Below, in pieces: positions 7,950 through 62,736 of a stretch of DNA of 64,000 nucleotides. Location: the NCBI GenBank assembly GCA_964036045.1, contig OZ038378.1:156426001-156490000 (forward strand). The letters run 5' to 3'. This stretch comes from Eutreptiella sp. 'Long Island Sound 2002'. Taxonomy: Eukaryota > Protista > Euglenida. Under the pieces are notes generated by a model. It searched no databases, was not told the origin of the DNA, and worked only from the letters and a program-made list of their open reading frames with translations. A program made the position numbers and the translations under genes. How positions within the stretch are numbered: the stretch's first letter is position 1; each line of letters starts with the position of its first letter.

Positions 7950-9650
7950 ACTCTGCTAATGTAGCATCCTATCTCTATCCGAAACGTGCCCCCAGCACAA
8001 ATGAGCAACATCTGCCTCATACAAACGGACTCGTGCATGTGCCTTGACAATGAGGCGCCGTGGAGACCAATGCTGAAACACCCGGCTGACAAGATCTGCC
8101 GGATTTGCATGTGAATATGCAAAATAGATCTCTACAAGCGCCCCCATCCAGCGCAACTTATGGGCCAGGCGACTGAGAATCCTGTGCTGAGGACAGAGGT
8201 TAGATTTAGCAGGCCCCCACAAAAGCTGGGCAATTGCCCCCACATTGTCCAGAACTAACAGTACATGGGGTTGCGGGGACCGGCGGACCAAGTCAAGAAC
8301 CGCTATAGCACGGAACAGCTCTGCAACCAGCTAGTGAACCACCCAGCTTGGGACACGTCGGACAGTTGGGCCCCTGGGTGACCAGAGGCCAACCACATAG
8401 CGACCTGGGAATGGAGATCCGGAGCTGCATCAGAAAAAATGCGGACAGTGGGGGCCACGAGAAACAGGGTGGGGCTCCCAGCCCCGGGAAGAGGCAGCAA
8501 TGGCCTCTAGAAGGGAGCATACAACAGCAAAAGGGGTGCGGGAAGACCAAAAAGGTCCCTGATTAAGCCAGGGACGGGGACCCGCCAGGAAAGAGCCCAC
8601 AAACGCAGCACGTCTGCCAAGCCACACGATCTTACCCAAGAGCCTTCTCAAGGATTTGCAGTGGTACGGTTTAAGTGGCAAAAGTAACCCCTTAGAAGCG
8701 ACACCCGCGACAAAAGAAGTTGAAGGGTCCATGCGGCCGAATTTAAATTTACACGCTTACCCATCCAGGTGATCAGCTTGGTGGGCTCCAGCTCGCTTTC
8801 GAGGCTGAGAATGTAGCGTGCTTGCTCCAGGGCCGCGGCAGCCCTCCTAGCCATATCGTGGACACCAGGCCGCGGGCCTACAAATAAAATGTGATTCGAA
8901 TATTGGATGATAAGCACCGCCGTGCGCGGTAGGAAAGACATGACACGATCAATGAGATGCTCAACTAAACCTGGCGCTTGATGCCAGCCAAAGAGGACTC
9001 TGACAGCTGCGGACCTGTTTGTACCATCCGCCACCCGGATGCAGTTGATAAGGCTGGGTGGAAGATGGACAGACCAATAGCAATTCTTAAGGTCCAACTT
9101 ACATGCCGACGGATGAGCACAAACAGTACGTAGGGAATGGGCCAGACCCTCAAGAGTGGGAAGGCGGAAACGGCGTGCTTTGTGGGCGCACGAATGGTTA
9201 AAATTAACCATATTGACAATCAAAGCTGCTTTCTCCTGGGATTTATATTTTACAAAGACTTGCGCATTGGCAGGATCGTGCATGGGTGGGAAAAGCCCGT
9301 CATGAAAAAGGGCACGTAACATAGCTGCAGCCTTAGGACAGGCCGTAGGCGGCCGCGAAGGGGCGTTGTGACGTGCTGCCTCAAAAAGGGAGTCTGCCCA
9401 TGTATCCCACAAGTCTGGTGCACCGTGTACCGAACCTGCAGGCCCTATCCCTTTGGCTGCTGTCACCAACGTAACATCATCTTTGGAGCCAAGGTGGGAG
9501 GAAGAAGCAGAGTACGGCGGCCCTGATGTGGCCGATTGGTGCAAAACCGACTCAGCCAAGCTAAGATCTCGGTCAATGTGCGAATCAGGAAAGTGTGGTC
9601 TATCACAAACCCATTGGATCACTTTTCACCACCGGAGATGTAGCAGGTGA
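7950..9650 (-). pseudogene. RT + RNase H of a DIRS/VIPER-type tyrosine-recombinase retrotransposon
   Basis: FVKYK, KLDLKNCYW, VLFGWHQAP, YSNHIL (decayed YxDD), WMGK, LRRLLGKIVW; RNase H motifs VLLVLDN and ANPADLVSR. Confidence 0.85.
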
Positions 9651-10654
9651 CAGGTCTCCACATAAGGCACAGGTTTATGAGATGAGAATAGGCGGGCTGC
9701 TTGGTCGAGATGAGCCGCTCACTGATCGCCGCACTGAGCGCACTTCTCAGGACGCGTGGGCACCCTCGGGGCCGCGAGAGCGGCTGGCGGCACGTTCCCG
9801 TCTGCCTGAGTAGTGTTGGGATCCGACACTGGCACGCGGCGTGGCTTGAGAGCTGCTTTGAGTCAGCATCGGGGTCATACGGGAAGGCGGATTTTTCAAC
9901 GGCGGCCCGCGACGTGGTCGAAGGACCCGGAGAGCTGCAGCTCGCCGTGACAATTGCTTAGACGGCCCAAGTTGCCCGACCCCCCCCCCAAACGCGCCCC
10001 CGACAAAAATGTCGCAGATGATGGTCATCAGAGACACGTCCTACAGGGGGGGACTTTTAGCAACAAGCAGCGCATGTCGGTTTCCGCTCGTTTTTGACTA
10101 CCCCCATATACGTTTTTGGCACTTTGCGCACAACACCAAGTTGAGGCTGGGCCCCGTGAAATATGGGGAAAACAGTCAAATTCTGAGGAGGAACCCCACG
10201 GAATGCATGTGTATATATGCACGGTGCAATCTCACTACACCAGCGGAGGCCCTACTCGTCGACGCATACCATTCTCATCAAAATTTGTTCTGCAGACAGT
10301 GAACTACTGAAGTTTGTCTGGAAAGAGACAGATCTCACCAAAACATGCTGCACAGGGACAATAATCGCAAACAGTTGTCTGGTTCCAGACACACGACGGG
10401 TAACCTGGTGAAAAATTGTTGTATTCCACAACAAGAACTGTGGTCCGCACCCAAATGACATAAAAAAGTGACAAGGGACTGTCAGTCTCGTGTTCGGGAA
10501 GGGAAAAAGGCCAAAACAGGCCACTGGGACCCAGAGCGCAGACTGGCACGGCAACAGGGTGCCACAGTGTTTATATGTTATGAATAGATATCGTGGTCAC
10601 CGAGCAGGCTTACAACAACAGTGTGCAACCAACAGCAACTACAACAGAGCACGT

Positions 10655-13600
10655 TTAATTCTTTTTGGAGCCATTGAACCGGTACTTCCGTGCCTGAAAC
10701 CCAATATTGGCCTTCTTGGAAGCAGACGACTGAGAATCGGTTCCCGCGGCTGCATACTCGTCAGGAGGTGATGCCTGGGCTTTTTTGTTGCCTTTGCCTT
10801 TTGACTGTGACCCGGAGGCTCTGTTCTCGTCTCCTTTGCGTGTGCGACCATCTTTTTTGCCAGGGCCCCGTGACTGCTTCGGTGTACCATACACGGCGTT
10901 CTCTGGCGTGGCACCCACCTCTTCCACTTCCTCCTCAGACTCCTGCTCTCCCACCGCCTTCTCGGGCACACAGCTGCAGTCCACAGAGCAACCGTCGGCA
11001 AAATTTTCAAACACTGCATTCCAGGGGATAGGGCTCAGCCCATCAGCGAAGCGTAAATTGCTGCATACGAGGGCACCAACGTCTGCAATAGATTCCTGCT
11101 CCGTGGGCAAACCCAAAAACACACTGATGGGTACCGGGATGCGCACTGCCATACTGCAGGCCAGCTATACTGAACTACTGATCACCAGGAACCACAGGGT
11201 ACTTGCTTCTGAGGGTACTGCACCCGCCGGGTGGTGCATGATAAACCCAACAACCTCTGTACACAGCTGGTTCACCATTGGACCACGAGAAAAGGCAAAG
11301 TAGCGAGTCACCTGTATAAGGGAACAGTGAGTCTGAGACCCCTACTGGTGCAGCTGGACTGGCCGATGTTGTCTGGTTCCAGACAATTTCCCACAATTTA
11401 CCCTTCTTAGGACGCATTCTGCCTCATATTGTCTGGTTCCAGACAAACTTTAGGATTCAACGGTGCACCCAGCGTGACTATGGTAGCAGGCAGCAGATCG
11501 CAACAGCAGACAGCAATACCTTCTTGGGTAGCGGATCTTTGGACACAATCAATAGCTCAGTGAATCCCATCGAGTACTGCTGTGTGAGAGATCCCAGAAG
11601 AAAGCAGGCCACTCAAATTGTTTTCAACCCCTCGTTGTCGTGCAACTTTCGGAGACCATCCAGCACTCCCACGACGTCACAAGCGGAGCCAACAATGAGA
11701 ACAAGCGTCCCAGACACCAAATTGCGGCTGACAACGGAATGAATGCCTTCCACATGTCCCTTTGGAACTTCAACAATGATCAGGCAATACGGCATGTTGG
11801 CCACTGTAGAATGTAGCGGCATACCAGATGCCATCCCAGTGATATGCATGACCCCATCTAGGGACTTGATGTCAGTCACCCCCGCCTCTGGGGCCTCAAA
11901 CCCAATGTCCTCGGTGATGAAGTTGACATCAGCAGCGATCTTGACCTCAGGGTTCACCGGGGGAAGTTTCAAGGCATTACGGAGGGGAGCATACGTGGGG
12001 TCACTCCAGATTGCAGCAGTGACCACATACTTCCAGGGGGGCCAGCAATTCTTCTCAGACCACTTCCAATTGTACGTCTTGAAGGTGACATGGGTCTTCG
12101 ACAAGAGACTCTGTTCACAGCGGGCCCGTTCTGCAAGCGTTTTGCGACCGGGGTCAACCAGGTCGTTGTCCGGGTGGCAGAGATGATGTTCCCACAGACG
12201 TGCAGCCTTCAGTTGCTTTGCCTTTTTTGTAATCATTTGCAGTGACACAATGCTGGAGCCCATGTACTGCGTAACCTCCTCGAGGTCTGGTGGGATGAGG
12301 CCTTCGATACATTTCCAAAAGTGCAACTTTACTGGCAGTCCACGCTTTTCCAATCCATGGACAGCAACCACAGCCTTATCCCCCATCACTTGCACCCAGG
12401 CGGCAATCGGAAACCAGTCTTTTCTTACAGTGTCCTGCAGAGCAGACAGGGGTGTTACCAGACACAACAGGAGGAATTCTGCTTTGAAAGGCCGCATCAG
12501 TGAAATGTTGTCCGGTTCCAGACATGGTGATCGAGGTATAGGCTTTGACAGGGATAAAAAAAGTTGTGTCTGGTTCCGGACACAAACAGGAGGAATTCTG
12601 CTTTGACAGGCCGCATCAGTGAAATGTTGTCTGGTTCCAGACATGGAGGTCGAGGTACAGGCTTTGACGGGGATAAAAAAAAAGTTGTGTCTGGTTCCAG
12701 ACACACACAGGAGGAATTATGCTTTGACAGGCCGCATCAGTGTGTTGTTGTCTGGTTCCAGACATGGAGGTCCTGGCACAGGCTTTGGCAATGATAAAAA
12801 TATATCCAGTGTGTGGTTCCAGACAACTGTGACAGCCTTCGTTGTCGCATGGGACAAATGTCCTAGCCAGGGACGCATGTGCACATAGTTCCTGTACTGC
12901 CACCCTGTGCAACACCAGGCATACCAGTGTCCCCTCCTTCAGTGTATAGCCACCCTTCACGTACAGCACTCCCAGGTGTTCTCGTATGGATTTCTCCTCC
13001 AGTTCATCGCGGTCCAGCTCAACACGCATGAGTTCCATCCGTGTAGACAGCTTCGGCAGGGTCGTGGCAGACTGCACAGCGTGTGATGCGACGGATGGTC
13101 ACAGCAGTTACCCCCCCCCCCCCCGACGAAGCGGCCGGTCACGCAGGAGAACGGGCAGGTCGAGATGGACGTCACATGCGCAGGATATTTCACTGGTGTG
13201 GGCATGCAGTGTCGCAGTGCACTGTCACAGTCGATATACCTGTGACGTGCCAGCGATTGACTCCCGTATGTGCAGAGAGACATCCGTACGAACCGCTTGA
13301 GCAAGAAATTGCACTGACCATGTTGGCGGTTCCAGATGGGCATTCATGTACTCCCGTGAGATTCGTCAACAGGCCTCGGCGATATGCTGCCCCGACAAGA
13401 TCCACTACTGCCCCACTGCGTCACGCCACACTATGATTCGGATTATTGCTGCATCTGGTGGATTCCTGCGTAGTTCTGTCATCTTGTCATGGACAAGATC
13501 TTCATCTAGCACTCTGATTTGGCCATGCTCCCTTTTTTTGTCCCATTGCAGTCTGCTGAGGGGCAGCAGGACCTCCTGGTCTTCAGTATGGGCACCAAGT

Positions 13601-13660
13601 CTCACTGGAGCATCTTTCCCCTTTGCTGTGTCACCACGTTTCCTACTACTATGCACTGTT
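10655..13660 (-). pseudogene. Spliced cargo gene: ParB/Srx-like N-terminal domain and weakly MTase-like C-terminal region; 4 premature stops
   Basis: Exons 13660-13240, 13071-12925, 12434-11520 and 11311-10655 join in frame through three GT-AG introns. The ParB-like segment is LPLSRLQWDK..GQIRVLDEDLV...IIVWRDAVGQ*WILSGQHIAEA. Confidence 0.7.
12449..12826. repeat. ~120-bp higher-order minisatellite (2 x ~60 bp), 3 copies, inside a predicted intron
   Basis: The unit CAGGAGGAATTCTGCTTTGACAGGCCGCATCAGTG...GGCTTTGAC.GGGATAAAAAAAG repeats near 12468, 12587 and 12708. Confidence 0.9.
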
Positions 13661-14077
13661 CTGGCAATTGGCAGGGCATAAACAGTCAGTGTCTGTTTCT
13701 AGACACATTTGCAGTCCAATTCCGAGTTAGCTGGCTACCCAATGTGGTTCTAGCATTTCCCAAAACAGAGCAGATGACGTTGCAGGCAATGGAGGGCACA
13801 ACACACAGTCTGTCTGGTTCCAGACACAACACCTTGACTTCAACAGATGACATGGGTGAAAAATCATTAATTATCTGGTACCAGACGGCTACGGTACTTC
13901 TGTGGGCAATAGAGGGGGTACAAACAGTTGGGGTGTGGTTCCAGACACACATGCAAGCAGTGTTTATAGTGCTGGCTTCCTCAGCCGGGTGTTCGGTTGG
14001 TTAGGGTCACATGCTGTGGTTTTCCGGTGAAATAGGGTTGTACAGCAATGCAACAGTGCACGTACGCGCGCATCTCA

Positions 14078-16333
14078 TCAGTCTAGCACTGCGTTGGTTG
14101 ACATTAGTGGTCCCTGCCGGAGTAACCCGATGCTGCTGTGGTGCCCAACTCCAGCCCTGTGTCTGGTGCCAGACACACACCTTTTACGTGCCCGGGCCAC
14201 TTCGGCGGGGTGTCTGCAGTCCATTGAGTCATGCTCCAGACTCACAACCTTACACTCCTCCATTTCTTGCAGTAGGACAACAGGTGGTGGTTCATCATCC
14301 TGTGCGTCCACGTCCACTATCAAATCCTCCACGGACCGGTGTGAATTTGAATCCGAGACAATTGCAGCTTCCGGGGCCTCATCGTCATCATCTGCTACCG
14401 CAATTGCTGTGTCCCGCACCCGCTGAGCCTGTGCATCTCGGCCTGCATGCTGGCGGGGGTCTCTGCCTGGAACAATGGTTCTCAACAACCGTGAGACCTC
14501 ATCGGTGGGCGAACGCGTTGCGCGTGTCAATGTGGAGAGTGATCTAGTCAACAGTCTCTGGTACAGTGCCACACCGCCGTTGTCCAGTGGTTGCCCTGGG
14601 AATTTCAAGTCCTCGGGGACAGCGGTGAATGCTGCCTTCTTTCCACTGTTCCATTCAACGTGGACCGTGCGGTTGGTTGTAATGGCCAACAGGAACCTGC
14701 TTAGCCGTGACGACATGATCGCAACCAGTCCACTGCGGATCTGCCCCCGCTTCTTCTTTTCCCCGCGCATTGGTGGTGCCATGCTCAAAAACAGGTCCAA
14801 GGTCTGGTCAACAGTCTTCATCTGGGGGTATGCGCGGCACCTAGATCCGAGACGACTCAACATGGCCTCCAGGGGCTCCTCAGCATAACAACAGCCCGGG
14901 ACGGCGTCATTCCAGGGTAACCACAACAGAAGGGCAGAACAAAGGGTGCGTACGTAGGGGACGTTACAGTCAGTGTCCATTGTCAAGGCTACAATCAATA
15001 CCAAACTCAACTCCAATACTTTGCGGGCCGTACGGCCTGTCCCTGCCGGTCGACCATCCCAGTTGCAGTCACGAACCAAAGTTCCAAGGAGGAACGCAGC
15101 CGGAATGTAGAGGGATCAATGGAATGTAGAAGTGCAGGAGGTTCTTCAGTCCAGTCAACCATACGAGTGGTAGCTTGCGGGATGCCTCTGGAACTTGCAT
15201 AATTGAAGTCTCCTTGTGTACAATGCGGTCCTCAACGTTGGGTGTGGCTAACAGTAGGGCACAAGATTGCTTCTCAATGTGCAACAGCTTCGGGTGGCAC
15301 AGGATATCTTCATCTACCGCAGGCATTTGCTGCCCAAGGTAGCCCAATATGGGGAAGAACTTACGGTGGAATGGTACACACATACTTATAAGGGTGCCAA
15401 CAGCCATACATCATTGGGAGAGTGACATAGTGCTCAGACAACTTAAAGGGGTTGAATGTGCGACTGTAGATGAACTTGGCGAGTCTGTAGCATATATTTT
15501 CATCCATCAGAAGGGGCATGACGTGGCGCGTGTGAACCTGAATGGCTAGGCATTGTTCCATGATGTGGAGCAAGTCCTCATTGGAGCTGGAGACCAGGGG
15601 GTACCATTGGAGTGAACGAATGCTGTCCCGGTGCACATCTAGTGGAACCCGTAGTGGATCTCGCCTCAAAGCGTCCACCGCTCGTGGGAACTCCCGGAAA
15701 TTGGCTGCTATGGTCTGTGCTGTTTAGGGGATGCGCTGGAGAAGATCATCAAGTGTAGGGAAACCCGGGTACATAGGAATCGCAGTTGTACGCAACACTG
15801 ACATGGCAGTGACGTTCAGACAGCAATCGAGTCGGACCGGGTCACTGCAGTACCGTCTGCAATACCAGTTGTCAAACTGCACCACCACCTGCTTCCCTGC
15901 CATTGATCTCCAGGTGGCGTTTGTTCTGGCATGTGCTTGTTGCCCCAAAGGCGGTAACCGGCCCGCGGCAAGACCTGCATGTGACAATCCCCGCATCGCC
16001 CTGGATGCACTTATCATTGAGCCAACAGCCTTTTCCTCTGGCAGAGCCATCTACCAACACATTTGCATCATTGTGTACACCTGGCGTGCAAACACTCCAT
16101 ACCACCTTGGCCACGGTGTTTGCCCATGAGCTTTGATCAACGTTGCCATATTGCGTCTGGTTCACCGGTTGACCCTCATATGTGCGCAGAACTACAAGCA
16201 GGGCTGCACCTGGTTCCTCATCGCGTAAAGCGGCATCCATAAGCTCCAGTGGTGTACCATACTTCCCTCCACGTAAGAACTCACGCAGGAGACCAAAGGG
16301 ATCTGTCGCAGCATTGGTCACCTGGCTCATCAA
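14078..16333 (-). pseudogene. DDE transposase with insertion domain, superfamily unassigned; stops and frameshifts
   Basis: VVVQFDNW (D1), SSNEDLL, MPLLMDEN (D2), YGCWHPYK (conserved His), CYAEEPLEAMLS (E); lies inside the TIR-bounded element. Confidence 0.7.
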
Positions 16334-17089
16334 CAGTGGAACAGAACCAGAGTAAACGAAACAGTGAACAACAACGAAACATACCTGCTCAGTGACCAGA
16401 CAATTGGTGGAGAGTGTCTGACACTAGACACTGTTCACTCAAATGAGGATCTTAATCACGGAATTTCAGCAAAATGTCTGGAACCAGACACATTCTCCAT
16501 GTTATGGGGGTGTACATAGGACGTATGACACTCGGGACAGACACCTGGTGATCCCCCCCCCTGAAAGGTTGAAAATTGTTTAGTTTGTCTGGAACCAGAC
16601 ACTGCGACCTCAAAAACTCGTTGTGACAGGGGTGGAATTTCAAAGAGTGTCTGGTTCTAGACACTTTTCGAAATTCCAAGAGAAAGGTACATAGGTGGAC
16701 AAAGATAACACAGCACAAAGTAAGACTTGTTCACTGAAGCTAAAAATTGACCATGCGCGGTCACCTGGGTTTGTGTGCGTGGATATGAGAACCAAAAAAA
16801 ACAGGCTGTCAAGCAGTCAAATTCAGGCACGCGTCTGAATGACTAAAAAACAAAGTATGAAATTTCCCACCCGCCAAAATGGCCCTTTTTGGGTGTTTTG
16901 GCCTGATTTACTGGGGTCGGCAACTTGGGCCGTCTAAGAATTGGGGAGCCGCACTGACAACTCGGGATACTCTACGAGGCTTGCGAGAGGGCCCCAAGAT
17001 CCGGGCGTGGGAAATTCATGTGGGGGGTCGGATGTCGTCATTGCTGTCGTCCCCGTCCATGGCGACGGGCGGTAATTTGTGATGGTACC

Positions 17090-17850
17090 CTAGACCAAGG
17101 GTAGCAAGTTCTCGGGCCGGATTTGGAAAGCCGCCATGGGACGTAACTCCACCCCTCGTTCTCCATAGGGCCACGGTAGGTCGACGGGGAAGAATACCTT
17201 CCATGAGAGCGGCGGTGATGAATAGTACCGAGCTTGCCGTTCACTCAGCCACCGGCCCCAGACAGTGATGACGGCAAAAGCTGCGCCTGCCCGGGCAAGC
17301 AGGGCGGCCGCAAAGCGTCGCCATGCATGCCATCCCGCATCATGGGCGGCCAATCCCCAAAGGAGGGCCCGCATCTGGGACTGCAATACGGTGGCACCCG
17401 CCGCGATGGGTAGGCAATCGGGCCTAACTGCGATGGATGGGGAGCGGGCCAATGCGGCCCGCCAGGCTTCTGCCCATGCCCCCATGAAGCATGGGTAGCC
17501 CAACCGGCCCCGCCCCCACTGTTTCATCTGCCGCCGTGGGGGCGGTCAATGGGGGCGGCATTGTTGACAACCTCCAGTTTCTTAGCTCTCGAGTGCTTGA
17601 TGCCAGAGCAGAACATCCAGTCATCTCCAATCAAGCCCTGGCCATTGGCAGATGGGCTCCCGGTACCGTGGATACATGGGCAGCCCTCTTGCGGGGGTTA
17701 TCCGTTACCGCCACCAAATACCCTGAGCGCAACAGCTGCCAAACCCTTCTCCGGCACCCTCGCCTCATGGCTCCACAGGGGAAGAAGTCCGTTCCCCTGC
17801 GTGGACTTGTCAGTGGAGTCCGCCTTTGTGAAAAGATTGGTCTCATCTCC
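17090..17850 (-). pseudogene. Tyrosine recombinase of a YR retrotransposon
   Basis: AGWHAWRRFAA...WGRWLSERQARYY gives the H-x-x-R, W and catalytic Y of the YR C-terminal box. Confidence 0.85.
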
Positions 17851-17859
17851 TCCACTGTC

Positions 17860-18950
17860 TGCCTAATCCAGTGTTACATTGTATGTATAACAACCCAATT
17901 GTATGGACGTTGTAACCCGGCAATTAGCACATGTGGAATGGTAAAAGGATATACACCGGCCTGTGGTAATGTCACAGCGCCGTATGAACGACACTTCGCC
18001 CACGTATAACAAGTGGCACACGGAGATGACGGCAAGGCCAACAGTGATGAAGTCGGATTCACTGGCAATTCTGGCTGCCATGTGCGCGAGCATAAGGGGG
18101 GTACCGTAGACTGGGGCATGGGCGGGATGGTCATATCTCCTGTTTGCATCGGCGGACATAGCCCCGGCCCCGGCGCTCCATTTTTGGCCGGGGAAGGAGA
18201 TTGGGAGCCTGATGGCCGAGATGCAGACTGTGTGGGCGCAGGGCACCCTTGCCAAGGCCCATGCATCAGGCCACATTTACTGCATGGACACGGGGGAGGG
18301 CCCGAAGCATCGTAGGTCCTGCCCATCGAGAAAGCAGTGTACAAGGTTTGGGCCCCAACATGCGTGAAGCCGCCTTCCCGCCCGGGTGCTGGTATGTTCA
18401 TGGGCACCTGTTATGAAAGTTGTGTTGGGCCCTACGTTGACTGATTTGCTTCGGCCGCTGGGTGCGGCGGTGTTTGGGACTGTTGAGGTCCGAACGTCGG
18501 TACACCGCGATTGCAGTCCCAATGTTATACATTCGGTTACGCCGGGTTACAACGTCCCAATGTCCATAAAGGCCGCAGCAAAAGCATGCTCCAGGCGGGC
18601 CACCACCACGTCGAAGGGGCTCCTTAGTCGGCGCTGGCATTTGCTGCCGGCCGGATGTCGGTGGGGCCGGAGCTTTGCACCGTGAAAGGTAGTTTAAACA
18701 CTCAGACGGTGTTATTGGGGGGGGGGGGGGTATAGGAGTACCGTGTTTGAGAATCCGCCGAGGTGTACCACGATGTACTACAAACCTGGACGCATATCTG
18801 GTTGGTTGTGATGTATGGATTTTCGGGGGCCAGGATGAAGACAATTATGTGTGGTCCGTTGAATGGTTTCGTTATGCTTCCGCAGCCTAGTAGGTTTCAC
18901 CCCCCGTGGTGTGCGGCAAATGTACCAAATGGGCTGTTGTTGCTGTAGGG
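17860..18950 (-). pseudogene. gag-like region of the same YR retroelement
   Basis: Decayed zinc knuckles CFCCGLYGHW and CSKCGLMHGPWQGC, upstream of the YR on the same strand. Confidence 0.6.
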
Positions 18951-19439: not shown

Positions 19440-20720
19440 GGCGGTTCGAATCCTGTCAGCCAACTATTGGCGGTGGTGCCGGCCCCATTTTCACCCGACC
19501 GGGGTAGGGACCGCCAACCATAAAGACTCTAATCATCTGCATTACCATTCGGCCACTGCCTTGTCTGAGGCGAAGTGTCTCCCCACTGCTTGGGGCCGCA
19601 AACTATGTGTTTCTGTCTAGCTGACTGCTAGCTTGGCTAAGGGACTGATGGGCCAACGACCTCAACACTGCTTGATGGTGGGGCAGGTGGCCAGTCGCGC
19701 GCATACGGAGAACGTGAGCAATGGTGGCCTCACTTTCGTTACACACCGTAACGGACCTGTGCCCTTTCCTAATGCAAACCTGATAGCCCACGCCAGGCCT
19801 CTCAGCTCCGTGGTCTGCTGGCTTGCAAAGCGGGCTTGGGGCGCCACATGCGTACGGACGCCCACACCCGGGATAAGTGCTCCCACCCGCCACCTCCCTG
19901 CATCACGCGCACCATGAACACAGACTATGACATCCCCGATCCACAGAGAGGAGGACGTAAGCCTGCCCTCCTTCCCAATCTGGAGGGCCTTCAACTGTCG
20001 CCACGCCTCCCCTCCTGGCGCCTGCCAGGGCTCGGCCGCCACCGCCGTCAACGTTGCGAGGCTGTCCAGCATTTTCAGGGGGAAACCCTGGGCAGGCTGC
20101 TTGACCCCTCCCACCGTCCTACCCCAGCGCAACCAGCAGTAGGCGCCCGCGGCGAAGGGACAACCGAATCCCCGCGGGCGCACGTGCCAGTTCAGTAGTC
20201 TCAGGAAGCTCTGAAGGTGCTGGTCATTTCCTCTCCCCACCGCCAGGCGCAGCCAGCCCACCCACAGCTGGAGCAGGGCTTGCTCATGGGTCCTGATTTG
20301 CCGGGCCGCCAAATCAACCTCCTTTCCCAAGAATGACGCCACAGGCACTGGGTCCAACACGCTCTTAGGAATGATGAGGAACCCGGCCTCGATCTGTGCG
20401 CGCACGGCCGAACGCCCCGCTTTCCTCGGCACCTCCCTATCAGTGAAGACGACCAAAAAGTCATCAAGATAGTGAACAAGGAGTATCTCAGGGGGCAGTA
20501 TCCCCCGCAGGATGCGGGCCAAACTCGTTTGGCACAAATACGACCTGTATTTCCAGCCGAACGGCAGACGCAACAGCGCCACAGGCGGGGCCCCGGGGGC
20601 GGGTCGGAAACGAAAAATCCGCCGTGCCTCCGGTGGCAAGCAAAAGCTCCAGAACGCGTTCTTGAGGTCTATGTGGACCACTTTAGGGCATTGAAGAAAG
20701 TAGAGCGGCCGCGCATTTTC
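19440..20720 (-). pseudogene. Second DIRS/VIPER-type RT + RNase H
   Basis: HIDLKNAFW, LPFGW, YLDDFL, FLGK; RNase H QQTTELRGL and a decayed DN motif. Confidence 0.9.
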
Positions 20721-21750
20721 GGAAGCGTCTAAGGTGTCGTTGGGCCCGTTTCATATAACTGGTCGCCCCGTGGTGTGCCCAAGCCTGCTGGGCCCTGTTG
20801 GAGGTAGGGTTGCAGTGCAACTCGTCTGCCACCTGTTGTTCGACCGCGTCTTGAAGTGGCTGTGGGCGGGGGTGTGCTTGTACAAAGCTCGGCGCTGCGG
20901 CAATGAAGGCGTCCGCCCTGTCCAGGGGGTGCACGGTGTGATCTTGGTGAGTCGGTTGCGCTTTGGACAATTGGGACATGTGGCGTGAAAACTTGCGGAA
21001 TAACGAGGAGGGCCAGTGCGACAAATTGCCATTGACGGGCGGCGGCGGTGGCGGCGGCCACGGTGCCAATGGGTTCATTGCTGTGACTCTGACCGCTTTG
21101 TGGTCACCCGCATGGGGAAAGGCGGCCGTGTCCGCAGAGATGGGGGGGGGGGTGAATGTGCCATGCCGTGAAAGAAAACACGACGGCGTCCAAGCGGCGA
21201 CCCCGGCAATGTGTGGAGAGATTTTGAGGGTCAGTTTTTGGCGCATGTGCCAAAATTTGGTCCAGCAAGGCTCCGGATTCGAGGAGCGGGTGCCGGTACG
21301 TGGTTTGTTGGAGAGGACGTCCCCACACGCAATCCTTGAAGTCTCCCATAAGGATGCCTAGGTCCGGCAATTGTGCAAGCTATTCGTGCAGCTTTTCACG
21401 TTGGTCCGGCGAAAATGGCCCTTGGATGTTGGCGATGGTGTACGGTGTGTGGCTAGGGAGAGCGAGTTTGATGGCACGGGCCTGGCTCCCCATGGAGGGC
21501 ATCTTGGAGACGCATCTGGATATGGAGGTGTGGACGAGGAATTGTGTGCCCGGGTTCTCGTCTCCATGGGTAACGGGGAGGTATTCACCATCCATAGCAG
21601 CTGTCCAAGCTGCATGCTGCGATCCACTACGGAATCGAAACTCCTGTAGGGCAATAACCGCGGGCTGTTCCGCGATAATCTCCGCCAGGAGGTGCCCCCA
21701 GCGTCGCCGTGAGAGGAAGGGTCCCCCGACATTGAGTGTTAGGAAGGATA
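20720..21750 (-). pseudogene. LINE-type AP endonuclease (EEP fold) plus linker
   Basis: FLTLNVGG, VIALQEF, IANIQGP, ILMGDF, RRLDAVVFS and AGDHKAV appear in canonical order, with one stop and one frameshift. Confidence 0.85.
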
Positions 21751-26505: not shown

Positions 26506-26789
26506 GTTCGAATCCAGGACCCATCTGTGCAAGGCTGGAGGGGAGATGGAGTAAGGGGTGCTGGTGTTTGGGTAATGCAGTGCAACTAATGTCCAGTGCC
26601 ACGTCTTCTGTGGTAATCATTACTTGATTTTGGTGATCAACGTCAGTTCGAATCCAGGACCCATCTGTGCAAGGCTGGAGGGGAGATGGAGTAAGGGGTG
26701 CTGGTGTTTGGGTAATGCAGTGCAACTAATGTCCAGTGCCACGTCTTCTGTGGTAATCATTACTTGATTTTGGTGATCAACGTCAGTTC
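26506..26789. repeat. Perfect ~140-bp tandem duplication starting at GTTCGAATCC
   Basis: Two essentially identical copies starting near 26506 and 26646. Confidence 0.9.
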
Positions 26790-28605: not shown

Positions 28606-31600
28606 TCAGATCTTAGGAGAAGCAGTGAACCGGGGCGCCGAAACGGGGCGCTTGACAAGTGATCCGGATGACAGCACTTTGGAGGGGGTGTACGGGGCTG
28701 CGCTACTGCGGGCGGCTGCCACGGCGTCAGTGGCCCTGACGCCTTTTTTGCGGTGGTGGCCCACGGCCTTCTTGGAAGGCTTCGGTGTGTCGAGCAGCGG
28801 AACCATCCCAGTGCTCAATCCCAACGCCTTCACGATCGGATTTGCCGGAGGTTGTTGCCTGGCCGGCGCACGTCCAGTCGCGTTGACAGTCCTGAGCATG
28901 TCCATTTCAACATCGTCCAACAAATCCGCTGCCAAGGCGGTGGAGTCCAAGACATGCGTACCCGCGAGCTTCGTCACCTGCGCCCGCGGCAACGACACAA
29001 AGAGGGAATCCGACGTCTTCTGTGCACTGTCAGCCAGGGAGGAACCCAACCGTGGGAGGGCAGAAGTGGGACGCAACTTGGAACGGCCTTTGGGTGACGG
29101 GGAGCGCTGCCGAGCGGGTCTCGATCGCTTGAGGGGGGTCGACGTAGCTCTGTCATAGGGGCCAAAGAGGGTGACTGAACTGCCCAAGGAGCTGGAGTGC
29201 AGCCGTGTCGGGGAGGCCCCGCGCGAGTCCGACTTTATTTGGCTTGCGCTTTGGCTCATAGACGTGTCGTTGAGCGCGGCGGCGGTGGGCACAAGGATAG
29301 CCTTGGACTTGGGGTGGTCGACGTGCGCAATGAAGTCGAGGTTTGAGTCCAGCGTTTGACGCATCACCAATTCTCTGCGGAACGAGAGCTTCTCCACCAG
29401 CAAGTACGTGCGCGCCTCCAGGCGTTCGAACACGGGCATCTCCCGCACCTCCTTCTCCAATCCGGCCCAATGCTCGCGCGCCTCCGCCCATGACTGAGCC
29501 GTGTGATGCATCAGACGGATGCGCTGCAGGAGACGCGCCACTTCCGGGGGCAGCTCCGGCACAATGGATTGCTGCATTGGCGCTTGCTCAAGTTTGTCAT
29601 CGGCAGAGGTTTCTCCATCACTTGCTTCCTTCGGCACATCTGCCTCAGGGGCCGGGGGCGTCTCTGGTTTGGATGGCGTGACTGGACGGGCCTCGTTGGG
29701 ATACAACGCCTGGTTGAGTACGCGCTCGATCCTGGACATGATGACGGCCACTGTGGTGGCCTCCTTGAAGTTGCTTTCGTTCATGAACCGCTCCCGAACG
29801 CCGGTGAGAGCCCGCAGCTCGTCGCACACGGCCCTCAGGTCCTCGACCAGCTCGTTTTGCATCATTGCGATCGGGCCTCCCCCCTTGGCACCGGTGGTCA
29901 GCCCTAATTGGGTGGCCCATCCTTCTTCAATGGTCCACGACAACGCAGGGAACCAACTGTCTGGATCCACGTCCTCAGCAGTCGCAGCCACACCGAGGCC
30001 ACTGCCATCTGAGCCATTCGCTAGAATACCACTTGGCGTGGCTCCAGATTTGGCGGATGCGACGGACGCCACATCAGCCGGCGACGCTGCTCCGGGTTTG
30101 GGGGACGATTTGGGCGAACCGGGGCCCGCTCTGGCGGATGCGACGGGGGACGGGCCGTGGGGCAGACCCCCATGAGGTCTGGCAGAGGAGAGAGGCGTGG
30201 GGGCCTTTGCGAAGCCCGATTCGGAGGGAGATGGACTGCCCTTCGTGTCCTTGGGCTTGGGGTCTGGAGCGGCTGTTGGTACCGGTGATGGTGAGGGTGA
30301 CGGTGACCAGGGCCGCAGTCTTGTCGTAGTGTCTGTCTTGGCGGTCTTGCCGGTTTTGGCTGACGGGGACAGTCTCTGCGGCGCCGTGGAGGGCCGGCCT
30401 GCCATCGACGCTGGCGCAGACGTGTCCACGTACGACTTTGGAGGGCGGTAGAAGGCGGTGGCGGTGGCGTTTGTGAGATCAATGGTGCGCCGTGCCGCGC
30501 TTTTGCGAGAGCTGCTGAATGGCACGGAGGGTCGGAACGACGACAGAATGGGGACGGGCTGGTGCTCCTCGGCGGGTTCATCGTCCTGGCGCGGCTGGTA
30601 CAACTTATATGTGGAAGATGGGTTGTAAAGATCCTTTGCAGGTGTCGGCGGGGGCCTCGGGGGATCCTCCGCTGCAGCTTTAGCTTCTGTCGTCTTCTCG
30701 GCCTCGGAATCTACCTGAGTGTCCTCGGGCTTCCCAATGAAACTTCCCTGCACTGATGGGGCCTGGAATCCGGGTGCGGACCCTGCTGCTTCTGAGCCAG
30801 GGCCGCCGGGACCATAACGTGAGGACATCAAAGGGTCGGTGCCAAAGCGGGCAGAGACTGGCATCATTCCGGGGCCGAATCGCGCGGAGGGCGGTACCAT
30901 TCCGGGGCCGAATCGCGCGGAGGGCGGTACCATTCCAGGAGGATACCGTGCAGACATCCCCGGCGCTCCCCCTATAGAGGGAGGGTACCGCGCAGACATG
31001 CCGGGCGGTGCCATTCCAGGGGGGCCCATGCCCGGATGCCAGCGAGCCGACATCCCCGGCGCTCCCCCCATAGAGGGTGGGTACCGCGCAGACATGCCGG
31101 GCGGTGCCATTCCAGGGGGGCCCATGCCCGGATGCCAGCGAGCCGACATCCCCGGCGCTCCCCCCATAGAGGGTGGGTACCGCGCAGACATGCCGGGCGG
31201 TGCCATTCCAGGGGGGCCCATGCCCGGATGCCAGCGAGCCGACATCCCCGGCGCTCCCCCCATAGAGGGTGGGTACCGCGCAGACATGCCGGGCGGTGCC
31301 ATTCCAGGGGGGCCCATGCCCGGATGCCAGCGAGCCGACATCCCCGGCGCTCCCCCCATAGAGGGTGGGTACCGCGCAGACATGCCGGGTGCCATGCTTG
31401 CAGTAGATCCTGGTTTCATCATGCCCATAGAGCCCCAGGCTCCAGAGCGGTTTGTCATCATCCCTGGCATGCCTGGCCCGGGGACTCCAGAGCGGTTGGT
31501 CATCATCCCCTGCATGCCTGGCGCCATGACTCCGGAGCGATTTGTCATCATCCCAGCGGAGACGGGCCCCATTCCCATGGGACTGCCGGGCCCCATTGCC

Positions 31601-34600
31601 ATGGGACTTCCAGGCCCAATTCCCATGGGACCGCCGGGCCCCATCCCCATGACGCCGGTCGTCATGGGGCTGGCAGGACCCGCGCCCGTGGCATCCGGTG
31701 AAGGTGTCCTTGCCTTATCCTGTGGCCCGTTGCCCTCAAACGTACCCGGGTGCACCATCGCCTGCGAGTTGAAGGAATTGTTGTTGAAGGAGTTGTTGTT
31801 GAAGGAGGTATTGTCGAGGGGGTTGCTGCCGAAGAAATTGCTCTGGGACTGGGCCACCCCGAGGAAGGGGCTTGTGCCTCGCTGACTGGGATCCATGGAG
31901 CCTGTCTGACTGGGATGCAATGACAGCATGGAGCCCATCTGACTGGGGTCCATGGAGCCCCCCTGGAAGGGCTGGGTGCCAGGCTCGCGGTCCTTTGGCT
32001 CTTCACCTTCGACACCCTCCACGCCGATCTGCGGCTGTGCGGCCTGATCACCAAATGGAAAGGAATAACCCTCATGCGGACCGGCCTCTCCTTGCAAGCC
32101 TCCAACCCCAGGGTATTGTCCCTGCCAGCCTTGCCAGTACTCAGCGCCCGGGTACTGTCCGTGCCAACCTTCAGCCCCAGGGTACTGCCCCTGCCACCCT
32201 GCAGCCCCAGGGTACTGCCCCTGCCACCCTTCAGCTCCGGGGTACTGCCCCTGCCACCCTTCAGCTCCGGGGTACTGCCCCTGCCACCCTTCAGCTCCGG
32301 GGTACTGCCCCTGCCACCCTTCAGCTCCGGGGTACTGCCCCATGTACCCGTACTGCGCCCAGTCTTGGTACGGGTACTGCTGTCCATACGCGCCGTAGGC
32401 CCCCGGAGGAAACATGCCGCCGGCCTCGGGCACCCCAAACGGCCCAAAGGGGTGTCCCCCAAACGCCGCCTCCGGCCCCATGTACCCCATGGGCCCCGCG
32501 GGGCCGTACCCGACCTCCGGGTTCCATCCGTAAGTCTCCTGCGCGGCCTGTTGCTGGTGTGCCTCGGCCTGTCTGGCCTGCTCTTGCGCCTGCTCCTTCG
32601 CCTGCTCTTGCCTCATCTCTTGCTCTTCTTTGGTGAACCCCGAGATCTGCGACATGTCGCTCTGCCGCGTGGCCATCTTCGAGGGGTCCGACGAGTCCGT
32701 GAAGGAGCTGGACGAGCCCTCGGTCCCGGAGGACCGCGTCGAGGGCAGGGACGACAGCGACGGCGGGGCCACGGACGACGCGTCGGACGAGGCGGAGAGC
32801 TCGGAGTCCGCGCCGGCGGTGGGTATTTTGACGTCCGGCGACGAGACGGTCCGCTCGGAGGCGTGAAGGGGCGAGCTGGTCGAGTCGGACGCGGTGGTCG
32901 CGAAGGTGCCTGCGCTCGCGCCGCTCATGGGGCTCAAGGGGCTGGCGGGGCTTGAGGGCTCCAGGGCGTTGCTCCCGGGGTTTTCGGGATCGAGGGCTGA
33001 GGGGATCTGAGGGGAGTCTGGCTGTGGCTCGGGCCCCGGGTCTTTGAACGTCTCGTCAGTCACCGGACTGTCATCAAGCAACGCTGGACGCGCTGGCAGG
33101 TCTTGTGCCGACAGATACTTATCCTCGGTTTTGGCTTCCAGCTGCTTCCAAAGCCCCATTACCCTTTCCTGAGGGGTCTTGCTGTCGTCCAGCAGCGTGT
33201 TCAAGAACACCGCAAGATCATTGTCTAACACCAGATGAAAATCCTGCACAACCCGGGGGCCCGAGGGAGAGTCCATCGCATCCAAACTTCCACCGGAGCC
33301 TCCCGCAGAGTTCATGGCCGCGGGCGCACTAGGATCCTCCAATTCACGCTTCCGCTGTGCATCTCGCTCCCGGTCCTTTTGCTCGCGCCGTTGTTGGGTT
33401 GAGGCTGCAACTTCCAGGCGGTGATTCGTCTCCGCTGAGAATTCCTCCAGCGCGTTCTTAACCCCGTCAGTCATGTCATCCTTCAGCCCCATGATGGCCA
33501 AAGACTTCAAGAGGTCGTATGCATCTTTGATCTGGTGGCTGTACGAGTCCTGCAGAATCGCAAAACCTTGCTGCTGCTGCTCAAGCTGCTGGATCTGCCC
33601 TTCCAAGCGGCTGATGAATTTATCTTTTGAGTTGTGCTTGTGCAACAGATCCTTCAACTCACGGCCTGCTTTGTTCTGCTGCTCCTGCAAGACTCGCTTT
33701 CGCTCCTGCGCCAAGTCTTTCCCAAAACCCACGATGCTCTCCACTTTGTCGATCTCCTCTATGTTGGGCAGCTGAACGTTGAGTTCCTCCAACTTCCTGT
33801 AGCACTCCCTGATACCGCTGATGGCCAGCCTGTTGGCCTCCTCCTCCTCCGACAGTTCGGTCGCAGCCGTCTTCAGATCCTCGGCAATACCAACTTTATA
33901 ATTCACCCACTTGTCCAACTGCAGTTGCAAGTTCTGCCGCTCATCCTCAAGAGTCAGCGTGCGGGCCACGTTCTCGTCAAATTGAGCCTGCATTGCCTTT
34001 GCCTGCGCAATGGCCTTCTGCAACCTGCTGTCATGCAAATCCACCTCCTCTTGGAGCCTCTCCACACCCTCAAGATGCTCAACATTGAAATTATCCTTGA
34101 TTGCCTTCATCTCTTGCTGATATTTCGTGACTGCTACCTTTTGCTTGAACTTGGCCTCCTTCTTGATTTCCTCGGGTTTGGTTTGCAATGTCTGCTCAGA
34201 CTCTTCGATCTCAAGCCTCAAGTCCTGGATGTTCGATTTCATGATGGTGACCTCTTTTTCAATTTGGTTCTTCAGATTGGATTTAGCGGCAAGCATCTTC
34301 CGCTCATATTCTGCCGTGAGTTCCGCAACTTGGCTGTGAAGATGTTCCTTCTCCCTCTCGTACAACTGAACCAGGGCCTCTTTGTCTTCACTCGCAGCCT
34401 GCTTCAGCTTTTCCTCGACCTCGCGCAGGCGCGCTGCCATGTCCTCTGACAACACTTGGGTCTCTTCCATGATCTTCAGAATTCTCGAGGTGTCGCCTGG
34501 GAAACTGTCCTTGAGGATCGAGAGCTGAGTAATGGCCCCGCGAGCCATTTGGTTCATCTTCAAATCCTCTTGGGCCGAGAGCTCCAACAACTCATCCATG

Positions 34601-35295
34601 GGGTCGTCAAGCTTGTCCTGCAACGCCTCCAAATTCTTGAACACATCCATCATATACTTATTCACGACTTTGTCCCCCTCTGCCTTCCGTTTACTTTGCA
34701 TCACCTCGCTCCTCATCTTGCACACTTGCATGTACAAACTGCCCTTGACGTACGTGAGCACGCGGTCCCTGCGCTGCAGCTTCCCCTGCAATTGCATGTG
34801 CAACATCTGCTGATCGTCCAACCGCTTGCGGGCATCCAAATTCGTGTGCTTCAGGAGCGCAATTTGGTTCTGCAGCACCACAACCTGATCGTTCGAGTCC
34901 TCCAGGGAATTGACCATATACTGCTCTCTCTCGTCTTCTGGCACGTAAGGTACCGCGTTCACAGCATCTTGCAGCAGTCCTTCGACATCTTGGAGCAGTT
35001 GCATGGGCTTGGAGACCGTGGAAGGCCCGGACTCTCCAACAGCATTGCTGCTACTACTACCACCATCGTAGTATTTGTTATATTGGTTGCGATTCGTTGT
35101 CGACGGCCCCGCACTTTCATGGGGTATTTGATCAAACTCCGATCGTATGTTATTGGCGACGCTTGCAAGAACGGCATCTTTCACCGCGGACAACTTGTTG
35201 CGAATATTCAAGCCGGGGTATTGGCGTATGTCCAAGTCAGGCGGTCGCCCTTCCGGCTCAACACCCAACAAACCCCCGGTCATGTCTACATCCAT
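28606..35295 (-). CDS. 2229-aa intronless protein: long N-terminal coiled coil, then Gly/Pro/Met-rich repeats and a disordered C-terminus; function unknown
   Basis: 6.7-kb open frame with ATG start; E/K/Q/L-rich helical region in roughly the first 650 aa; all internal repeats preserve the frame. Confidence 0.9.
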   Translation of the reverse strand: MDVDMTGGLLGVEPEGRPPDLDIRQYPGLNIRNKLSAVKDAVLASVANNIRSEFDQIPHESAGPSTTNRNQYNKYYDGGSSSSNAVGESGPSTVSKPMQLLQDVEGLLQDAVNAVPYVPEDEREQYMVNSLEDSNDQVVVLQNQIALLKHTNLDARKRLDDQQMLHMQLQGKLQRRDRVLTYVKGSLYMQVCKMRSEVMQSKRKAEGDKVVNKYMMDVFKNLEALQDKLDDPMDELLELSAQEDLKMNQMARGAITQLSILKDSFPGDTSRILKIMEETQVLSEDMAARLREVEEKLKQAASEDKEALVQLYEREKEHLHSQVAELTAEYERKMLAAKSNLKNQIEKEVTIMKSNIQDLRLEIEESEQTLQTKPEEIKKEAKFKQKVAVTKYQQEMKAIKDNFNVEHLEGVERLQEEVDLHDSRLQKAIAQAKAMQAQFDENVARTLTLEDERQNLQLQLDKWVNYKVGIAEDLKTAATELSEEEEANRLAISGIRECYRKLEELNVQLPNIEEIDKVESIVGFGKDLAQERKRVLQEQQNKAGRELKDLLHKHNSKDKFISRLEGQIQQLEQQQQGFAILQDSYSHQIKDAYDLLKSLAIMGLKDDMTDGVKNALEEFSAETNHRLEVAASTQQRREQKDRERDAQRKRELEDPSAPAAMNSAGGSGGSLDAMDSPSGPRVVQDFHLVLDNDLAVFLNTLLDDSKTPQERVMGLWKQLEAKTEDKYLSAQDLPARPALLDDSPVTDETFKDPGPEPQPDSPQIPSALDPENPGSNALEPSSPASPLSPMSGASAGTFATTASDSTSSPLHASERTVSSPDVKIPTAGADSELSASSDASSVAPPSLSSLPSTRSSGTEGSSSSFTDSSDPSKMATRQSDMSQISGFTKEEQEMRQEQAKEQAQEQARQAEAHQQQAAQETYGWNPEVGYGPAGPMGYMGPEAAFGGHPFGPFGVPEAGGMFPPGAYGAYGQQYPYQDWAQYGYMGQYPGAEGWQGQYPGAEGWQGQYPGAEGWQGQYPGAEGWQGQYPGAAGWQGQYPGAEGWHGQYPGAEYWQGWQGQYPGVGGLQGEAGPHEGYSFPFGDQAAQPQIGVEGVEGEEPKDREPGTQPFQGGSMDPSQMGSMLSLHPSQTGSMDPSQRGTSPFLGVAQSQSNFFGSNPLDNTSFNNNSFNNNSFNSQAMVHPGTFEGNGPQDKARTPSPDATGAGPASPMTTGVMGMGPGGPMGIGPGSPMAMGPGSPMGMGPVSAGMMTNRSGVMAPGMQGMMTNRSGVPGPGMPGMMTNRSGAWGSMGMMKPGSTASMAPGMSARYPPSMGGAPGMSARWHPGMGPPGMAPPGMSARYPPSMGGAPGMSARWHPGMGPPGMAPPGMSARYPPSMGGAPGMSARWHPGMGPPGMAPPGMSARYPPSMGGAPGMSARWHPGMGPPGMAPPGMSARYPPSIGGAPGMSARYPPGMVPPSARFGPGMVPPSARFGPGMMPVSARFGTDPLMSSRYGPGGPGSEAAGSAPGFQAPSVQGSFIGKPEDTQVDSEAEKTTEAKAAAEDPPRPPPTPAKDLYNPSSTYKLYQPRQDDEPAEEHQPVPILSSFRPSVPFSSSRKSAARRTIDLTNATATAFYRPPKSYVDTSAPASMAGRPSTAPQRLSPSAKTGKTAKTDTTTRLRPWSPSPSPSPVPTAAPDPKPKDTKGSPSPSESGFAKAPTPLSSARPHGGLPHGPSPVASARAGPGSPKSSPKPGAASPADVASVASAKSGATPSGILANGSDGSGLGVAATAEDVDPDSWFPALSWTIEEGWATQLGLTTGAKGGGPIAMMQNELVEDLRAVCDELRALTGVRERFMNESNFKEATTVAVIMSRIERVLNQALYPNEARPVTPSKPETPPAPEADVPKEASDGETSADDKLEQAPMQQSIVPELPPEVARLLQRIRLMHHTAQSWAEAREHWAGLEKEVREMPVFERLEARTYLLVEKLSFRRELVMRQTLDSNLDFIAHVDHPKSKAILVPTAAALNDTSMSQSASQIKSDSRGASPTRLHSSSLGSSVTLFGPYDRATSTPLKRSRPARQRSPSPKGRSKLRPTSALPRLGSSLADSAQKTSDSLFVSLPRAQVTKLAGTHVLDSTALAADLLDDVEMDMLRTVNATGRAPARQQPPANPIVKALGLSTGMVPLLDTPKPSKKAVGHHRKKGVRATDAVAAARSSAAPYTPSKVLSSGSLVKRPVSAPRFTASPKI
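30860..31390 (-). repeat. Coding tandem repeats: 96 bp x ~4.5 (MSARYPPSMGGAPGMSARWHPGMGPPGMAPPG) and 33 bp x ~2.5
   Basis: Direct reading of DNA and protein. Confidence 0.9.
32120..32345 (-). repeat. Coding 30-bp repeat x ~7 (GQYPGAEGWQ)
   Basis: Direct reading. Confidence 0.9.
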
Positions 35296-59400: not shown

Positions 59401-59469
59401 GGACGGGGGACGAATACGGTACCACATACGGTACCACACGGTCCAATAATTCGTATTACCAGTTTCAAT

Positions 59470-62400: not shown

Positions 62401-62736
62401 TACCAATTTGGGTCATTTTGGTAAGTGGCCCTAAAACGCAATAAAACCTTGTCAGAACCCCTACATCCCTAACGGCCGGCTCAATTGCATCTCAAGAGGC
62501 CCCACCCCCCATTTGGAAAACTTTTATTGCGTTTTTGGGCCACTTACCAATTTGGGTCATTTTGGTAAGTGGCCCTAAAACGCAATAAAACCCTGCCGGA
62601 ACCACTACATCCCTAACGGTCGGCCCAATTGCATCTCAAGAGGCCTCAGGCCCAATTTGGAAAACTTTTAGTTCGTTTTTGGGCCACTTACCAATCTGGG
62701 TCATTTTGGTAAATGGCCCTAAAACACAATAAAACA
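59470..62736. repeat. Satellite, ~143-144-bp unit x ~23, each unit containing a 29-bp-stem inverted repeat
   Basis: Unit starts at 59470, 59614, 59757 and so on; arms TTTTATTGCGTTTTNGGGCCACTTACCAA and TTGGTAAGTGGCCCTAAAACGCAATAAAA. Confidence 0.95.

Follow-up and report, generated by a model that had tools for sequence, protein, structure and literature searches.

Clustered palindromic sites at a preferred distance in a multi-gene transposon with terminal inverted repeats, and different palindromes in its distant relatives

What keeps a short palindrome recurring about every 60 bp when the DNA between its copies bears so little resemblance from one interval to the next? The question is raised by a 64-kb stretch of contig OZ038378.1 of Eutreptiella sp. 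'Long Island Sound 2002' (positions 156,426,001 to 156,490,000; the window hereafter, with coordinates counted from its first base), in which an original prediction, made from the sequence alone, had pointed to arrays of such palindromes within what it called an element. We examined the window together with related loci and with more distant relatives of one of its proteins, protein A. The palindromes belong to a transposon of about 7 kb, and the reading that we come to favour is that a protein encoded by this transposon recognizes them.

The palindromic sites and the transposon that carries them

A search of the window for GTCTGGWWCCAGAC allowing up to two mismatches returned 18 matches, against a mean of 0.71 and a maximum of 4 in 100 dinucleotide-preserving shuffles. 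All 18 fall within 10316-16662, and the rest of the 64 kb has none. The core of the site is the 14-mer GTCTGG-WW-CCAGAC, extended in most cases to a 16-mer by a flanking T and A. The two arms form an exact inverted repeat, with the asymmetry confined to the central dinucleotide, which reads AA on the plus strand at sites 10316, 16476 and 16587 and TT at 12 of the 15 remaining sites, the exceptions being 13873 (TA), 14161 (TG) and 13691 (TT, with a degenerate arm). The outermost pair at each end is therefore head-to-head and the internal pairs are head-to-tail, and the same orientation pattern is found in other copies of the element. The start-to-start distances of the clear sites are 61; 60; 58, 61, 60, 61, 61; 121, 61, 60; and 111, 62. 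Decayed copies are visible at ~13751 (within the 121-bp gap), ~14228 and ~16416, and a half-site at ~12450. All the distances listed in the original prediction were reproduced in this way, its extra values of 60 resting on such degenerate copies, and the AA centres that it had placed near the element ends were seen both here and in the other copies.

The ends implied by the word element could also be located. Homology to other copies begins exactly at 9957 and stops exactly at 16938, delimiting a unit of 6,982 bp with its genes on the minus strand. Terminal inverted repeats (TIRs) lie at 9957-9982 (+) and 16913-16938 (-), and the identical five bases AATTG stand outside both, at 9952-9956 and 16939-16943, as a target-site duplication. 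Twenty nucleotides of the TIRs are exactly complementary and ~26-33 nt match at 94%, the inverted repeat being traced over 9951-9983 and 16913-16943 (33 nt). The termini begin with CTTAG and are identical in the copies L001, L003, L004 and L008. Three of four complete copies have a 5-bp target duplication (AATTG in the window, AAAAT and AAAGC in the others), and L001 has none. Protein C of the element has 55 close relatives, all on large contigs of a single ENA assembly, ERZ25074135, from which six protein C loci were retrieved for comparison of the copies; relatives of protein A number 39 and likewise lie on different large contigs of one assembly. Five aligned copies of the element are 87-96% identical. 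Given the TIRs, the 5-bp duplications and the many dispersed copies at this level of identity, the region is a cut-and-paste transposon of ~7 kb, present in many copies within one metagenome-assembled, eukaryote-like genome.

The element holds four to six minus-strand genes, and in the sense of that strand its order is TIR, array 1, gene A, array 2, small open reading frames (ORFs) and gene B, array 3, gene C, pair 4, gene D, pair 5, TIR. Array 1 (16416-16662) lies 276 bp inside the right end and 83-330 bp upstream of gene A; it comprises four sites, one of them decayed, spaced 60, 111 and 62 bp. Array 2 (13691-14241) has five clear and two decayed sites at distances of 60-61 bp (121 across a decayed copy), 228 and 67 bp, and the window copy lacks ~0.33 kb adjoining it, including two more sites, that other copies possess. 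Array 3 (12450-12824) consists of six sites and the half-site, 58-61 bp apart, and is built as a 121-bp higher-order tandem repeat (12458-12800, 89% matches) with two alternating spacer types. Pair 4 (11371-11444), upstream of gene D, has two perfect sites 60 bp apart. Pair 5 (10316-10390), 359 bp inside the left end, has two sites 61 bp apart with opposite central orientation and no clear gene downstream.

The sites and their spacing within and between families

The sites were counted over the window and seven related loci. These eight sequences contain 110 sites in 51 kb of element DNA, compared with 12 weak ones in 159 kb of flanks. Among neighbours no more than 300 bp apart, 65 of 81 distances measure 57-62 bp (mode 61, n = 39), and nine more measure 109-122 bp. 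The original prediction had named a motif conserved no better than its flanks as the result that would speak against it. When the units are stacked in register, the palindrome columns carry 1.6-2.0 bits, as against mostly less than 0.7 bits in the spacer columns, so that this adverse result was not obtained.

The same prediction had called the spacers mostly unrelated to each other. Outside 12458-12800 they are indeed close to random, but a faint similarity remains: for non-redundant spacers, the 121-bp repeat being left out, identity in register over the inner 40 nt is 28.7%, compared with 25.5% (standard deviation 1.2) in circular-shift controls, 0.75% of which reach the observed value (p ~0.008). 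Because of this similarity, the ~60-bp units probably share a remote common origin or else a weak additional feature, in which a run of T precedes a C-rich block near the middle. A stronger test is offered by L002, a diverged subfamily with 65% identity in protein C. The L002 sites match at 12-14 of 14 positions and are 61 bp apart, while its spacer between genes C and D, with an identity of 0.45 to the orthologous one versus 0.52 after shuffling, aligns no better than shuffled sequence; the spacer upstream of gene C retains weak similarity (0.64 versus 0.51). Sites and distance have thus been kept where the spacers have not, as predicted for a protein-binding site under a distance constraint. 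From the sequences compared, the distance itself would appear to be constrained, since the spacers have fallen to random-level identity and yet their length is held to within 2 bp. On the other hand, the claim that simple tandem duplication could be discarded as the source of the period did not hold up. The 121-bp tandem repeat is live, copies differ in having four or six sites, and the faint similarity of the spacers also speaks for duplication.

The arrays themselves vary between copies. Array 3 has 4 sites in L001 and L005 and 6 in the window, L003 and L008, which indicates that the 121-bp double unit is still expanding and contracting. The array upstream of gene C is inverted in L004 (9628-10000) and contains ~6.3 kb of foreign DNA in L005 (3292-9767). 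In L001 (9788-9810) an internal deletion of 1.45 kb has both of its ends in palindrome sites, corresponding to 14161 and 12689 of the window. The arrays appear to be hot spots for deletion and inversion inside the element. Over all copies, the commonest variants of the site are transitions inside the symmetric CAG/CTG core of an arm, at times in both arms, which cytosine deamination in a symmetric context would fit, rather than selection for pairing.

All five of the more distant protein A families examined have a palindrome of their own, different in each, in 9-13 copies per element. L006 comes from the same assembly as the window and its protein A is 30% identical; its palindrome, GCGCTCTGCAGAGCGC, is present in 11 copies, with pairs 61-71 bp apart. 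Since L006 and the window share an assembly, one host contains two palindrome specificities. L010, from a sediment metagenome, encodes an intact protein A of 747 aa and has 13 copies of the 18-bp palindrome TTCGCTCCATGGAGCGAA (11 of them within 3 mismatches), laid out as four sites at 69-bp steps before gene A followed by four pairs at 67-68 bp, that is, with a pair and run spacing of 67-69 bp. The palindromes of both L006 and L010 are perfect through the centre, with no loop. L009 is a complete element of 6.5 kb with 13 copies of a palindrome of the type GCGCGCC-N-GGCGCGC, single or 18-39 bp apart, and its TIRs have a GGCCCAA core in common with those of the window element. L012, a contig with an intact gene A, has 9 copies of its own palindrome at irregular spacing, and L013, a contig with gene A, has 12 copies of its own 14-mer (eleven of them identical), which are 24-40 bp apart where clustered. 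The start codon of gene A is preceded by a site, at a distance of 80-87 bp, in the window, L001, L010 and L012. Several accessory ORFs are weakly related between families, so a multi-gene make-up is also common to them. Family-specific palindrome clusters are therefore a hallmark of the group, with a distance that is fixed within a family and different between families. It was originally suggested that the distance amounts to about six helical turns. A distance of 60.5 bp is ~5.8 turns at 10.5 bp per turn, the 67-69 bp of the L010 pairs is ~6.5 turns and other families use 18-40 bp, so that strict six-turn helical phasing is not supported. In searches for further relatives, none was found on IMG/VR viral contigs, and a scan of JGI metagenomes yielded one 1.2-kb fragment as its sole match.

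Genes of the element and its surroundings

Gene A (14078-16333, -) is a putative DDE-type transposase gene, recognized from the translations of its ORF pieces, from family residues and from the model and fold matches described below. The window copy is broken: its frame changes at least three times and meets an in-frame stop at least once, and the conserved acidic and W-H motifs can still be read in the pieces. Gene A is also interrupted in all the other copies read, the least damaged of which has one interruption. An exhaustive search with protein A collected 1,228 cluster representatives at E <= 1e-3, 345 of them at E <= 1e-30. Full-length members of the family have 700-800 residues. None of 45 full-length relatives matched a Pfam family, sequence searches of the PDB with two profiles gave nothing meaningful, and the source databases name these relatives only 'hypothetical protein'. 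One relative, P0261 (696 aa), is encoded on a 715-kb contig and represents 288 member sequences; it seems to belong to an intact family of very high copy number in a different genome.

Invariant residues of the family (P0095 numbering) are D115 in a W-x-D-N motif, D200, D250, W285-H286, E327 and E525/E528. An AlphaFold model of protein A, built with the family alignment, reached a predicted local distance difference test score (pLDDT) of 90.6 and a predicted template modelling score (pTM) of 0.87. In this model the order of strands and helices is RNase-H-like, D115 would lie on the first strand and D250 just past the fourth, and E525/E528 are predicted on a helix after a long insertion of helical (coiled-coil) structure. 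Foldseek comparison with the PDB gave no significant match, and appreciable probability was obtained only for the Hermes, P element and RAG1 transposases. These matches are weak (E 0.17-0.45, probability 0.2-0.63, template modelling score up to 0.39), those to the P element having a probability of 0.54-0.63 and E 0.32-0.35 and that to a RAG1 chain a probability of 0.23 and E 0.41; no Pfam or PDB sequence match to the RAG1 core was found. Against viral structures the model returned only coiled-coil noise. Taking the residues and the modelled fold together, we infer that protein A would be a DDE-type transposase and belong to the insertion-domain class. The N-terminal region of protein A (100-190 residues) is both helical and basic and has a conserved motif rich in arginine; its conserved basic helix includes R-x-N-R-x-T-R-R. 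This region is a candidate for the DNA-reading part.

The other genes are smaller. Two ORF remnants between array 2 and gene B (13125-13644, -), of 114 and 78 aa in other copies, were detected by tblastn with the ORFs of L008. Gene B (12830-13038, -) is an ORF of 69 aa that is missing from L001. Gene C (11613-12386, -) is intact and encodes 257 aa from the chosen ATG. A distant relative of its product (27-33% identity) at 17059-17879 (-) of L007 lies ~6 kb from a diverged copy of gene A, which places protein C in a wider family tied to these elements. Gene D (10655-11152, -) encodes 165 aa with a charged, low-complexity tail, or 207-218 aa with an upstream extension in other copies; like gene C, it is open in the window copy. 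Structure prediction for protein C gave an unusable model (pLDDT 36). Pfam and PHROGs scans assigned no family to any ORF of the element or to the relatives scanned.

Around the element the window looks eukaryote-type, with long ORFs, satellites and reverse-transcriptase fragments, and no sign of a human contig was seen. Two of the latter (RVT_1), at 8648-9622 (-, E 0.026) and 19662-21246 (-, E 9e-8), indicate a retroelement remnant on either side of the transposon. An ORF of 1,419 aa at 42682-46941 (-) has an N-terminal RRM (E 2.5e-4) and, within 43372-45812, a 45-bp unit repeated in frame 54 times at 98% identity. Another of 2,229 aa at 28606-35295 (-), with no Pfam match, lies in a stretch of 62-65% G+C and contains internal tandem repeats (96 bp x 4.6 at 99%, 30 bp x 6.7 and 45 bp x 2.8). 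A perfect 140-bp direct duplication (2.0 copies, 100% identity) occupies 26506-26789. A 3.3-kb satellite at 59469-62735 has a 144-bp unit with higher orders of 288 and 431 bp; a likeness of the element ends to this satellite was considered, and blastn gave no match. Rfam and tRNA scans found no match in the window or in the seven loci.

What may read the sites, and comparison with known systems

The palindromes are, in our view, rather probably family-specific sites for a dimeric protein encoded by the element, used for gene control, for recognition of the ends or for both. The sequence comparisons favour such a reading because the site and its distance alone are kept. They favour an element-borne protein because specificity differs between families, even in one host. 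A two-fold symmetric dimer also fits better than an RNA hairpin, since in L006 and L010 the palindrome stays perfect across its centre. Several observations weigh on the other side. No recognizable DNA-binding domain was found in any protein of the element with Pfam or PHROGs, and the assignment of protein A as a transposase rests on motifs, topology and weak fold matches, without a significant match. In young copies of the window's own family the motif is not clearly better preserved than the rest of the non-coding DNA: their identity to the window is 0.917 in the motif, 0.920 in other non-coding DNA and 0.877 in the spacers. The test is a weak one, dead copies being subject to neutral decay. 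In L009, L006 and L010 some sites lie inside the transposase reading frame, so their placement is not strictly promoter-like. Finally, spacing is not conserved across families, and any distance rule must therefore be family-specific.

The main rival, itself unlikely, is that the palindromes act as hairpins in RNA or single-stranded DNA, or that the members of a pair form one long stem, giving transcript ends, processing signals or sources of small RNA. Folding energies agree with it: a single site folds to -11.4 kcal/mol (z -2.5), and a pair folds as a long stem enclosing its spacer at -30.8 kcal/mol in the window and at -40.1 kcal/mol in L010, with z -4.7 for both. The sites also lie between genes, so that they are at once downstream of one gene and upstream of another. 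The same change in both arms, found in a few copies, would agree with selected pairing; such changes are, however, the same transition on both strands of the symmetric CAG/CTG, for which selection for pairing is not needed, and most site variants alter one arm only. Moreover, the sequence itself is fixed within a family beyond what pairing would demand, a hairpin loop cannot use the palindromes of L006 and L010, and the terminal pairs stand where no gene follows.

The sites could instead bind a transcription factor of the host and be used by the element as promoters, as their position before genes, including the site 80-87 bp upstream of gene A, would suggest. We regard this as improbable, since the motif is nearly absent from the 159 kb of host flanks, a different palindrome is in use in L006, from the same assembly, and six different palindromes in six families fit factors that travel with the element. 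It is more doubtful still that the arrays are a functionless, old and decayed 60-bp minisatellite, with the palindrome as its slowest-decaying part or homogenized by gene conversion. The live 121-bp tandem repeat in one array, the differing site numbers, the faint in-register similarity of the spacers and the level of motif identity among young copies all agree with a minisatellite. Its difficulty lies in the very large contrast in information between palindrome and spacer and in a distance that stays within 2 bp beside spacers of random-level identity, where indels would be expected to blur it. In addition, the L002 subfamily retains sites and distance with unalignable spacers, and distant families show independent palindromes in the same layout. 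Least probable of all, and only a slight chance in our estimate, is a role in replication or maintenance, as origins or partition sites of an extrachromosomal form comparable to viral repeat regions or plasmid iterons. The architecture does resemble the homologous regions (hrs) of baculoviruses (PMC4535591), but the element is integrated, with TIRs and target duplications, and has no recognizable replication gene according to Pfam and PHROGs, nor any relative on IMG/VR viral contigs or significant match to viral protein structures.

If a dimeric element-encoded protein does read the sites, the binder might be one of its small accessory proteins or else the transposase-like protein A, by way of an N-terminal part that is basic and helical. 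It would bind before each gene and just inside both ends, at sites set ~61 bp apart as pairs or as arrays of more than two. Sites placed before each gene suggest a shared control signal, through which the bound protein could tie the genes of the element into one self-controlled unit, operator- or enhancer-like. The head-to-head pairs inside both ends, one of them without a downstream gene, suggest a second role, in which bound protein would help to mark and pair the termini. The arrays would grow and shrink by unequal recombination of the ~60-bp unit, with 121 bp as the double unit, and selection would then retain only the palindrome and the distance while the spacers drift to near randomness.

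A broader proposal can be put forward tentatively. With protein A as its defining protein, there may be a widespread, unannotated superfamily of eukaryotic TIR transposons that carry several genes. Each family would have a private palindromic 'operator', repeated in pairs of locked distance ahead of every gene and within both ends. Such an element would form a self-contained regulatory circuit whose palindrome and reader co-evolve against cross-talk. If true, this would be a type of circuit familiar in viruses and phages rather than among cut-and-paste transposons. If an element protein reads the sites, the families would also provide a natural series of one layout with at least six palindromes and family-specific distances. 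This series could serve to study the co-evolution of a DNA-binding protein with its sites and the wiring of transposon genes to one signal. Gene callers now report the protein A family as 'hypothetical', and recognizing it as transposase would improve repeat masking and gene annotation in protist genomes and metagenomes. Arrays of element-specific binding motifs are known in cut-and-paste transposons. The putative transposase family described here appears to be unannotated, and no published account of this type of element turned up in the literature searches made for one.

Among known cut-and-paste transposons, the CACTA group (En/Spm, with TnpA) offers many short, family-specific motif copies in direct and inverted orientation. 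Alongside TIRs and a transposase that are conserved, CACTA elements have diversifying, family-specific subterminal repeats, to which an element-encoded protein binds (PMC2613891). The reader is a protein other than the transposase, or derived from it, and acts both in transposition and in the control of transcription (PMC2613891; bioRxiv 10.64898/2026.08.24.746577). More generally, transposases can be sequence-specific transcriptional regulators of their own copies (bioRxiv 10.64898/2026.08.24.746577). In contrast, the motif of the window is a 14-16-bp palindrome in fixed pairs at ~61 bp, present in every intergenic region and not just near the ends. The element is not itself a CACTA transposon: it has CTTAG termini in place of the pentanucleotide that gives CACTA its name, a 5-bp rather than 3-bp duplication, and no tnp2-type Pfam domain in the 45 full-length relatives of protein A.

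The hAT transposon Hermes, one of the few and weak fold matches of protein A, also has several short motif copies inside its ends, and these subterminal repeats, which BED domains of the transposase read, are contacted by several protomers of one transposase assembly (PMC10368747). Unlike those repeats, the motifs of the window are palindromic and occur internally too, and the target duplication is 5 bp and not 8 bp. Membership of hAT was set aside on the same 5-bp duplication and on the lack of any Pfam match to a BED finger or to the hAT C-terminal dimerization domain. Shorter target duplications are reported for some hAT groups. The P element was likewise rejected, with no Pfam match to a THAP domain and 5 bp in place of its 8-bp duplication. 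Transib/RAG1-like elements have a 5-bp target duplication, as does the window element. An ordinary minisatellite is resembled at 12458-12800, where the 121-bp repeat lies; elsewhere the units have just the 14-16-bp core and the distance in common.

A virus-like identity, such as a polinton or an hr-bearing virus, was dropped, no viral gene or relative having been found. Baculovirus hrs nevertheless invite comparison. They consist of three to eight units of 64 bp, each with a 24-bp imperfect palindrome, function as origin and enhancer, and are bound by a dimeric virus protein (PMC4535591). The hrs conserve the whole unit, whereas the window element conserves the palindrome alone, and the host of the sites is here a 7-kb chromosomal transposon without viral genes or structural matches to viral proteins. 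The clustering of ~64-bp palindrome units between genes nonetheless parallels the five clusters and the 58-62 bp period of the window, and by this analogy the baculovirus hrs are the closest match in period and layout.

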